Source: Vitrella brassicaformis CCMP3155 (taxonomy: Eukaryota; Protista; Chromerida). From it: a DNA stretch of 64,000 nt. The stretch is taken from NCBI GenBank assembly GCA_001179505.1, contig CDMY01000294.1, positions 67,350 to 131,349 of the forward strand. Direction: 5' to 3'. The notes beneath the pieces are model-generated. The model had not been told where the DNA came from and ran no database searches. It saw only the letters and a program-made list of their open reading frames with translations. Shown here piece by piece: positions 10,163 through 13,100 of the stretch. Positions within the stretch are counted from its first letter, which is position 1. Each line of letters opens with the position of its first letter. Made by a program: the position numbers and the translations under genes.

Positions 10163-13100
10163 ATGGCGTACTACGACCGCCGCGGCGACTCGTACGGCCG
10201 CTCAGACCGTTCCTACGACTACCGCGGTCCTCCAGGCGGCTACGACAGCCGGGGAGGGTCCTATGGGGGGTCCGGTTCGCGAGGGTTCGGTGGCGGGAGC
10301 TACGGCGCCAAGGAGAGCTTTGGCGGGAACCTCCAGGCCGTCAACTGGGGCAGCATTGAGGTCGTCCCTTTCGAGAAGAACTTCTACATGGAGCACCCCG
10401 CTGTGCAGGCCATGACTGACGAGGAGGCCGACGCCGTCCGCCGCAACAACCAGATCACCATCATGGCGGGCCGCAGCGTCCCCAAGCCGGTGCGCAACTT
10501 CGAGGAGGCCTCCTTCCCCGACTACATCCTCGACGCCGTCACCCAGGCGGGCTTCAAGTCCCCCACACCCATCCAGATGCAGGGCTGGCCCGTCGCCCTC
10601 TCCGGCCGAGACATGATCGGCATCGCCGAGACCGGCAGCGGCAAGACGCTCGCCTTCCTCTTCCCGGCCGTCGTGCACATCAACGCACAGGCGCACTTGA
10701 GGCCCGGCGACGGGCCGATCGTCCTGGTGCTGGCTCCGACGCGCGAGTTGGCGGTGCAGATCAAGCAGGAGTGCGACCGGTTCGGGCGGTCGTCGCACAT
10801 CAAGAACACCTGTGTGTACGGCGGGGCCCCCAAGGGTCCGCAGGCGAGGGATCTGAGGGAGGGGGTCGAGATTTGCATCGCCACGCCCGGCCGCATGATA
10901 GACTTCCTCGAGGTGAGTGAGAGAGGGAAACAAACAGAGTGGGTGGTGCGTGCGGCGGCAACATCATCTTCGTGTGCCTCGTGTGCCTCGTGTGTGTGTG
11001 TGTGTGTGTGATAGAGCGGCACGACCAACCTGCGCCGCGTGACGTATCTAGCCCTAGACGAAGCTGATCGGTACACACACATGAGACGACAGCTGCCTGC
11101 CTGCCTGCCTGTTGTGTGAGGGTGTGTGTATGACCTTCTCTGTGTGTGGTGTGTGTGTCGATGTCAGTATGTTGGATATGGGTTTCGAGCCTCAGATTCG
11201 CAAGATCGTGTCGCAGATCCGCCCCGACAGGCAGACACTCATGTGGTCCGCCACGTGGCCGAAGGAGGTAGGTACATACCACAACACAGCCACAGTAGTG
11301 GAGAGGAGCCATGTAGAGGTGCCGACCATCCCATCGCTGTGTGTGTGTGGCATGTGTGTGTCAGGTTCAGGCGTTGGCCCGCGACCTCTGCAAGGAGGAG
11401 CCGGTGCACATCAACATCGGTACGGATGGGGTCATTCATGATGAGATGAGGGATCTCTTCTCATTGGACCGTCTGTGGCTGTGTGTGTGTTCAGGTTCGT
11501 TGGAGTTGCGAGCGTGCCACAACATCAACCAGTATGTCGAGATCCTGCAGGTGACTTACTTGCTTAATGAACCACACTTTACCACGTACAGACAGACCCA
11601 CACCCATGCACTGCACAGACATTACTTACGTCAAGTCACTCACAGCCAGGGAGAGACAGCGAGGGGGCGAGAGAGGCAGAGAGAGGGATAGCTGTGTTCT
11701 AGCTAGACACACGCATCCATCCATCCAGCAGCAGCATCAGACAGCCAGCCACCAGCACACTAAGTGGACATAGCTAACATACACCCACCTAGTCAGTCCC
11801 CGCCCCATTTTTGCCGTCCGTCCGTCAGCCCCTCCCCTCCCCTCCCCTCCCCTCCCCTCCCCCCCTGCCTGGTGCCTTTTCCTTCGCTGTGCCTGCCCCT
11901 TGCTCTCTCTCTGTGTCTGTGTGGTGTGGTGTGTCTGGCTGCTGGTTGTTCGTTTCCTGCAGGGAGGTTCATTCACAGGCTACGGAGCGAGGCCACCACC
12001 AAGGGCGGGGCGGTTGGAGGACGAAACCAAGAGGCACTTCAAGCCGCTCGTCAATTGATGACGGGCGGAGCACTGCCTGCACTGCCTGCACTGCACGATC
12101 CGCAATGCGATCGTGTATGTGTGTGTGCTCGTGCGGCGCTGCTGCCGCCACACAGACGATGCACCTGACTGACCTGGTCGATTTGGTCAGTCAGAGTGTC
12201 TGTTGGTCGGCATGTCGGTCGGTTGATGTGCCTGCCTTGTTCCTTCCGCCCGCCGGTGATTCTCGCTCCCGCAGCCGAGTAGCCTGTGAGGACCTCTCTG
12301 TGGACGGACCGATGGACAGAGTGAAGTGACTGAGTGCAGTGTGTGATAATAGTGAGTGGCGGATGGCTGGGAGGGTGGGTGCGTGATTGGATTAGCTGAG
12401 GTAGTCCTCTCTCTTTTGTGTCGGTAGCTGTAGCTAGCTAGTCGTAGGTAGAGAGAAAGGGCTCGCAGGCACTGCAAGCAAAGCAATGAGAGAGGACGTT
12501 TGTGTGTCTAAGTCGAGTCGCCTTTAAGTGCCGTTTGTCGTTCGTTGATTGGTCCGTTGGTTCGTTCGTCTGTCCATCCATCCATCGGTCGCTGCACGGC
12601 TGTCTTACCGGTCCCTGCCTCTGCCTGTGCCTCTCTGCGTCTATGTGTGTAGGAGAGCCAGAAGTGGAGCCGCACTCAGGAGTTGCTAACGACACGTATG
12701 AACAACGGCCGCATCCTCATCTTCACCGACACCAAGAAAGGTCACAGGGAGAGGGAGAGGGAGAGGGAGGGAGGGAGGAAGGGAGAGAGAGAGAGAAGGA
12801 AGCCTGTGTTGTTTGTGTACATCTATCTCATCTGTGTGTCTGGTGTGGGGTCCGGTGCGGGTGTGTGTGTCCTGGGGTACTGCCTGCCTGCAGGTGCGGA
12901 CAACCTGACCAAGAACCTGCGGCTGAACGGCTTCCCGGCCCTCTGCATCCACGGCGACAAACGGCAGGAGGAACGAGACTATGTAAGCCAAGCAGCCCTC
13001 CCCCCACCACACCACACACACCACACACACCACACGCCCTCCGCCCATCACACACATCGATTCACACGCATACGTCACATGTGTGTATGGCTGTGTGTGT

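Follow-up and report, generated by a model that had tools for sequence, protein, structure and literature searches.

The DDX5/DBP2 RNA helicases remodel RNA genome-wide, and one odd intron keeps their dose within tight limits in yeasts, human cells and plants. According to Kilchert et al. 2015 (PMC4695336), who cite Barta & Iggo 1995, Iggo 1991 and Moore 2011, Saccharomyces cerevisiae DBP2, Schizosaccharomyces pombe dbp2 (intron 2) and human DDX5 (p68) each have one long, poorly spliced, conserved intron, and a helicase-dead mutation relieves retention of the DBP2 intron in budding yeast. The homologous land-plant genes DRH1/RH46 have a long intron in which an internal 3' splice site is hidden by a conserved hairpin of 19-20 base pairs ('DEAD'). 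When the helicase opens this hairpin, splicing shifts to forms with a cassette exon, an alternative 3' site or a retained intron, every one of which has a premature stop, so that the element feeds back negatively on helicase activity (Burgardt et al. 2026, bioRxiv 10.64898/2026.01.23.701338). The same study reports the DEAD motif to be absent from algae. Here we describe the DDX5/DBP2 gene of the chromerid Vitrella brassicaformis CCMP3155, which lies in a stretch of 64,000 nucleotides (nt) of contig CDMY01000294.1 (assembly GCA_001179505.1, positions 67,350 to 131,349 of the forward strand; hereafter the window, whose coordinates are used for all Vitrella positions). The gene likely contains an unproductive-splicing module. 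Because its fifth intron is retained in a share of the otherwise completely spliced mRNAs, and because apicomplexans have a long intron at the same spot, this intron is probably a self-limiting switch. Splicing-based self-limitation of DDX5/DBP2 is known; what would be new is the use of a different intron, in a lineage for which our literature searches found no description of it. Full-text searches on DDX5/DDX17 splicing regulation in apicomplexans and chromerids returned nothing specific.

A preliminary description of the window, made from the sequence alone, had stated that DBP2/DDX5 genes autoregulate through an intron in yeast and human, a precedent that the literature bears out and extends to plants (PMC4695336; bioRxiv 10.64898/2026.01.23.701338). 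Like the classical DBP2/p68 intron, intron 5 of Vitrella is a single unusually long and poorly spliced intron in a gene of the same family, and its retained form appears to be an unproductive RNA: it measures 1102 nt against 75-153 nt for the other introns, and it is retained in contigs of two samples. The position is different. Motif V (Vitrella residue 421) is where the classical intron lies, whereas the long intron of Vitrella and Toxoplasma gondii is at residue 339/340; at the motif V position neither species has an intron, and Vitrella exon 8 (13129-13297) runs unbroken through it. Given this difference in position, an independent evolution of the Vitrella arrangement is plausible. With the plant element Vitrella has in common a DDX5-like helicase gene and a long intron with an internal alternative 3' splice site, which in Vitrella is a candidate only. 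It differs from the plant element in lacking an Rfam match, a better-than-random fold (z -0.36) and a significant long-range duplex at the acceptor, and in that the retained form is the only one seen.

The helicase gene and its long intron

By its domains and closest relatives, the Vitrella gene is an orthologue of DDX5/DBP2, as the preliminary description had proposed. Its 552-amino acid (aa) product (P0122; CEM00032.1, A0A0G4ERJ7) has the Pfam domains DEAD (RecA1; E = 1.9e-28, on exon 1) and then Helicase_C (RecA2; E = 2.1e-20, on exon 8), and its translation shows glycine/arginine-rich tails at both the N- and the C-terminus. The best named relatives, at 63-73% identity, are Perkinsus dbp2, Toxoplasma and Besnoitia DDX17 and a JGI entry named 'DDX5/DBP2', with Babesia also among the closest; the names of the nearest relatives are those of the DBP2/DDX5/DDX17 family. 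Exon 1 is 100% identical to a 385-aa open reading frame (ORF) from MMETSP, P0001, and P0122 falls into the same 90% cluster as P0001.

Exact spliced alignment of the canonical transcript contig (L005) places the transcription unit at 10036-14211 on the forward strand. The coding sequence runs from the ATG at 10163 to the TGA at 13997-13999 in 12 exons (10163-10912, 11015-11070, 11168-11267, 11365-11419, 11495-11550, 12653-12740, 12894-12982, 13129-13297, 13400-13458, 13537-13597, 13705-13791 and 13911-13999). These are separated by 11 GT-AG introns of 102, 97, 97, 75, 1102, 153, 146, 102, 78, 107 and 119 nt, so that the single long intron of 1102 nt at 11551-12652, noticed in the preliminary description, is confirmed. 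It is excised whole in the canonical mRNA and kept whole in a second isoform. Exon 5 (11495-11550), the final exon of the RecA1 half, ends ...QYVEILQ with CAG at 11550 in phase 0, and exon 6 (12653-12740) opens the RecA2 half; the intron lies between the DEAD and Helicase_C domains, at residue 339/340 in the linker between them. Its donor is GTGACT; in leave-one-out scoring only two of the 11 acceptors are weaker than its own, ...tgtgtgtag.

An isoform that retains intron 5

The transcript evidence consists of assembled contigs, from which isoforms that are rare and unstable may be absent. Three Vitrella products of the gene are present in the protein collection, and their contigs were aligned to the window. 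Contigs L001 and L002, from two JGI-held MMETSP samples, have exons 1-5 correctly spliced; from 11494 on they are colinear with the genome, L001 as far as 11852 and L002 as far as 11850. Contig L003 is colinear over 11852-12742, covering the rest of intron 5 and exon 6, then has all six downstream introns spliced and reaches 14208. Combined, these contigs keep intron 5 entire and have the other ten introns removed. The canonical contig L005, from which intron 5 is removed, occurs in the same sample as L001. Both upstream contigs end within a (CCCCT)x6.8 repeat inside intron 5 (11829-11862, forward strand), which looks like an assembler break and not an RNA end.

In the retained form the reading frame continues for 46 codons into intron 5 and ends at a TAG (11689-11691, forward strand); the product, P0001, consists of the RecA1 half followed by 46 unrelated residues. 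The preliminary description was thus right that the intron between the two RecA domains yields a truncating isoform, but it had attributed the truncation to a spliced-in exon at 11963-12114. Because contigs L001, L002 and L003 retain the whole intron, the unproductive isoform in evidence is intron retention, and the premature stop is the TAG at 11689-11691 and not the TGA at 12056. Detained or regulated retained introns occur in otherwise fully spliced poly(A)+ RNA, and Vitrella is alike in that one specific intron persists while all others are removed.

The same junction in other alveolates

'Complete' ORFs from five other alveolate assemblies depart from the helicase precisely at Vitrella residue 339/340. 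In each, a valine follows, the GTN of a phase-0 donor, and after it an unrelated tail of 33-75 aa; the tails are also unrelated between species. These read-through ORFs come from Digyalum oweni (GHVL01009093 and GHVL01009091), GHVR01016351 (with two variants), GHVS01058137, Polyplicarium translucidae (isoform 3) and the Logan contig L007, which is unspliced for 562 nt at the site and has lower weight, as it may be genomic DNA rather than RNA. Full-length isoforms accompany the read-through ORFs in Digyalum, GHVS and Polyplicarium. When the residues at which the fetched homologues cease matching P0122 were tallied, they fell into three piles: about 45 fungal, plant and other ORFs at residue 421 (after ...TDVAARG and I or L), where the classical DBP2/p68 intron sits; a fungal pile at residues 386-388; and the alveolate read-through ORFs at residues 338-341. 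The residue-421 entries in public databases, which break off between TDVAARG(I/L) and the following G, are exon-1-only or read-through models and form a recurrent annotation artefact. One further candidate for a retention-truncated product, P0002 (contig L008), was rejected as a frameshifted contig.

The long intron itself recurs at this position. In gene order, the approximate intron lengths are 125, 125, 210, 126, 1260 and 121 nt in T. gondii, 145, 118, 262, 285, 1367 and 190 nt in Neospora caninum, and 138, 140, 252, 161, 1461 and 128 nt in Besnoitia besnoiti, the long one being in each case the intron at 339/340. In Cardiosporidium cionae the 339/340 intron has 1915 nt versus 271-496 nt for the others. 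Counting Vitrella and contig L007, its position and length are seen in six genomes. The gene is intronless in Babesia caballi, and in Perkinsus olseni the 339/340 site has no intron. Nucleotide similarity between Vitrella intron 5 and the homologous introns of six other taxa, L007, Cardiosporidium, Toxoplasma, Neospora and Besnoitia among them, was not detected, these taxa being too distant for a conservation test.

The long intron has also misled gene models. In T. gondii RUB the long intron is the exact point at which the annotation divides the gene into two partial models of 357 and 193 aa (P0243 and P0244). An extra 30-aa exon lies within the intron in the earliest Neospora model, NCLIV_050680 (578 aa), and was dropped in the reannotation (548 aa). 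The NCBI model of C. cionae places an extra in-frame exon of 141 nt (47 aa; L012 4830-4970; NLRGSS...ELCGKS) in the middle of the 1915-nt intron, and the residues of this insert occur in no other homologue.

A candidate poison exon within intron 5

The exon put forward in the preliminary description is a candidate cassette (poison) exon of 152 nt (11963-12114, forward strand). The coordinates given there for its acceptor, phase, stop and donor are all correct in the sequence. A TG-rich tract followed by cctgcag (11919-11962) forms a candidate internal 3' splice site, ...ttgttcgtttcctgcag, ending at 11962. The frame from 11963 continues exon 5 in phase 0 for 31 codons (GGSFTG...PLVN) and meets a tandem TGA TGA at 12056-12061; a candidate donor, gtatgt, begins at 12115. 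Inclusion would bring in an in-phase stop (TGA 12056-12058) and would in addition shift the frame, 152 not being a multiple of 3.

The 3' ends of the gene's introns have (TG)n-rich tracts before [CT]AG in place of classical polypyrimidine tracts (10985-11014, 11140-11167, 11340-11364, 11470-11494, 12640-12652, 13375-13399, 13510-13536 and 13675-13704, forward strand). All 11 true acceptors consist of a TG-rich tract and then [CT]AG, and the candidate, TG-rich and then CAG/G, is built in the same way. For scoring, the gene's own 11 sites served as the basis of a weight matrix, which is crude given that number; built on these TG-rich acceptors, it selects about 0.4-0.7% of the AGs in the window. 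The candidate acceptor scores 12.1, the top of the 80 internal AGs (runner-up 7.9) and above the median of the true acceptors in leave-one-out scoring. The claim that it is strong holds to this extent; it is weakened by the finding that 118 of 1000 dinucleotide shuffles of intron 5 (12%) hold one that is equally good or better. The candidate donor scores 3.1 and is preceded in rank by more than 15 of the 91 internal GTs, and 317 acceptor-donor pairs within the intron exceed the weakest true-site scores. A premature stop after inclusion is expected for nearly any intronic segment, and an open stretch of 31 codons with a stop after it would be expected of any pseudo-exon. A 9-nt tandem repeat (GCACTGCCT x2.8, 12070-12094) makes up the 3' third of the candidate. 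Because shuffles match the acceptor this often, the donor is ordinary, the stop is the default and part of the exon is a tandem repeat, the features of the candidate exon, though real, do not clearly exceed chance at the level of sequence.

Structure prediction gives a local hairpin at 12087-12121 (forward strand; prediction from one sequence only) that would enclose the candidate donor GT at 12115, and the duplex test at the donor region is borderline (p ~0.05). The 9-mer TCCTGCAGG is present twice in the gene, at the exon 5/intron 5 boundary (11543-11551) and at the candidate acceptor (11955-11963); its core, CCTGCAGG, is self-complementary, so pairing between the boundary and the candidate acceptor is conceivable. 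For the true 5' splice-site region, the best duplex partner is indeed 11940-11964, yet this duplex is no better than those of shuffles.

The junctions 11550>11963 and 12114>12653 are present in no assembled contig or ORF, and L003 runs unspliced across both sites. No protein in the collection of 5.8 billion sequences ends in the poison-exon peptide, and neither the 100%-identical matches nor the 90% cluster of P0001 include an ORF with it. Among proteins of 137-437 aa that are 100% identical to exon 1, the retained-intron ORF stands alone; a cassette product would have about 370 aa. Since isoforms of low abundance and stability may escape assembly, the cassette exon is not refuted by the absence of splicing at 11963 and 12115, and a rare form that uses the cassette or an alternative 3' splice site may exist.

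A conserved exon-like block in coccidia

The long introns of T. gondii, Neospora and Besnoitia have conserved islands in common, the strongest of which, in the comparison of T. gondii with Besnoitia, is 82% identical over 148 nt (E = 2e-33). An exon-like block within them (T. gondii L006 4011-4096, with 4043 as a second candidate start; Neospora L013 3811-3900; Besnoitia L009 4338-4417) has a core with a shared GTGAG donor at its end and conserved AGs before it, and this core is the 'exon' of the old Neospora model. A 2-nt indel in the core between T. gondii and Neospora means that the reading frame is not conserved. From the conserved acceptor, the T. gondii block of 86 nt would cause a frameshift and lead to TGATGA eight codons into the next exon; the Neospora block has 90 nt and is in frame; in Besnoitia, one candidate acceptor (tag/G) would give 80 nt with a TAG at codon 6. 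To judge from this pattern, what is conserved is a non-coding regulatory exon or RNA element and not coding sequence. Between the block and the Vitrella candidate exon no similarity was detectable; the block raises the prior for a cassette exon in the long intron across the lineage.

Within an upstream island, the segment GCCAGCCT(CGC) is the reverse complement of ...AGGCTGGCAG, which abuts the conserved acceptor. In T. gondii the two segments lie at about L006 3502-3512 and at 3999-4009, and equivalent islands are present in L013 and L009. Pairing of GCCAGCCT with AGGCTGGCAG could mask the coccidian acceptor. In Toxoplasma and Neospora, islands 1b and 2a come out as best duplex partners, but the duplex energy does not differ significantly from that of shuffles (8, 33 and 22 of 60).

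Genes of SR and hnRNP splicing regulators have poison cassette exons coupled to nonsense-mediated decay (NMD). The helicase resembles them in that an RNA-binding-protein gene contains a stop-bringing intronic exon-like block, which in coccidia is conserved in nucleotides and not in protein. It differs in that no inclusion was observed in Vitrella and that coupling to NMD may be weak in the lineage (PMC10449492).

A proposed self-limiting switch and its alternatives

The explanation that we favour, with a probability of roughly 55%, is that intron 5 is regulated and inefficiently spliced, that its retention leads to unproductive RNA, and that the module is common to chromerids and apicomplexans. 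Two outcomes would compete. Removal of intron 5 as a whole would give the 552-aa helicase; if intron 5 stays while the other ten introns are spliced, translation would stop at TAG 11689-11691, after the first RecA domain. The retained-intron RNA would be unproductive through nuclear retention or degradation, and NMD may act on it, as it may on a cassette isoform. We infer that retention is regulated, and by analogy with DBP2/DDX5 in yeasts and DRH1 in plants the helicase itself most likely tips the balance to the unproductive form, which would amount to negative feedback. A second unproductive route may be open through the internal acceptor at 11962/11963. If the apicomplexan lineage does have such a switch in a different intron, it would be a clear case of convergence on a splicing-based dosage sensor, and Toxoplasma, where genetics exist, would offer a testable regulatory element.

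Several points weigh against this explanation. The retained-intron contigs could be splicing intermediates that were assembled because the intron is long and the gene highly expressed, and other introns of the gene are also retained in some transcriptomes (e.g., Digyalum P0006 and P0011). NMD is reported to be inefficient in Plasmodium (PMC10449492). The fold of 11920-12140 is no better than those of shuffles (z -0.36), nor is the best partner of 11938-11970 in the search for an acceptor-masking duplex (p ~0.4). Finally, neither metagenome contig scans nor homologue comparisons found relatives of Vitrella close enough for an intron-conservation test. A scan of metagenome contigs, in a collection without MMETSP contigs, with the 25-nt 3' end of exon 5 gave no match, and a scan with P0122 gave spliced contigs only, at <=70% identity and with no Vitrella relative among them, one of these contigs (L061) coming from a human-gut metagenome but not taken to be human DNA; a Chromera velia orthologue is not among the top homologue matches, no search having been aimed at that species.

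It is rather doubtful that nothing here is regulatory, the intron being simply long and slow, the contigs pre-mRNA intermediates and the candidate exon a chance assembly of splice-like motifs in TG-rich sequence. Such an account would agree with the weak statistics of the candidate sites, the missing structure signal and the retention of other introns in some transcriptomes, and long retained introns are easier for assemblers to recover than short ones. It does not sit well with the same position bearing the sole long intron, among short neighbours, in anciently diverged lineages, with the conserved islands of the coccidian intron, or with six independent read-through ORFs at this junction versus one or two at other junctions over the same length range. 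We give somewhat more credit, though we still regard it as unlikely, to the cassette exon of the preliminary description, spliced between exons 5 and 6 so that TGA 12056 triggers NMD and feedback; it may represent a further and less stable outcome of the same switch. No internal AG scores higher than its acceptor at 11962, which shares the build of the true ones, and the authentic 3' splice site of intron 5 is comparatively weak; the homologous plant family uses such an internal 3' splice site, with forms that are hard to see since they are degraded; the same intron of coccidia has a conserved non-coding exon-like block, and the Cardiosporidium and old Neospora gene models put an exon there. 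Set against this are the missing junctions and the unspliced course of L003, the 12% of shuffled introns that reach the acceptor score, the unremarkable donor, the partly tandem-repeat sequence and the lack of similarity to the coccidian block.

Very improbable, finally, is that the intron hosts a small RNA, such as a small nucleolar RNA (snoRNA) or microRNA (miRNA), or that the retained form makes a useful RecA1-only protein. Moore and colleagues are said to have described, in 2011, a miRNA in the conserved human DDX5 intron, and the 385-aa ORF is 'complete'. Yet Rfam gave no match at E <= 1 inside the introns of Vitrella, Toxoplasma, Besnoitia and Cardiosporidium, and in L007 it gave one sub-threshold miRNA match, which we took as chance; the ORFs of intron 5 are low-complexity on both strands, and the read-through tails are unrelated across species. 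A snoRNA had been considered because TGATGA occurs both in the candidate exon of Vitrella and in the block of Toxoplasma, and was dropped, as no D box or terminal stem was visible by eye and Rfam gave no match.

The self-limiting switch can be extended, tentatively, to an evolutionary proposal. Chromerids and apicomplexans may have evolved their own DDX5/DBP2 dosage sensor independently of the motif V intron of fungi, animals and plants, in the form of a long intron at the RecA1/RecA2 junction whose retention would be set by helicase activity; this is a possibility that we hold well short of even odds. Such a sensor might include a non-coding cassette exon (11963-12114 in Vitrella, the GTGAG-flanked block in coccidia), and the coccidian pairing of GCCAGCCT with AGGCTGGCAG could then be a helicase-sensitive mask, by analogy with the plant DEAD hairpin.

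Other features of the locus

Assembly gaps account for 1800 N in the window (about 20000-25999, 41000-42999, 45000-45999 and 55000-56999). On the minus strand, a divergent neighbour gene (9000-9960) encodes a 631-aa product with no Pfam match on record in the L004 locus table; its start lies upstream of that of the DDX5 transcript, at a distance of about 200 nt. Besides the C-rich (CCCCT)n repeat of intron 5 (11829-11862), the helicase gene has G-rich (AGGGAG)n tracts in intron 6 (12746-12796) and in the 3' untranslated region (14205-14222). These repeats could fold into i-motifs or G-quadruplexes, in a gene whose relatives unwind such structures.

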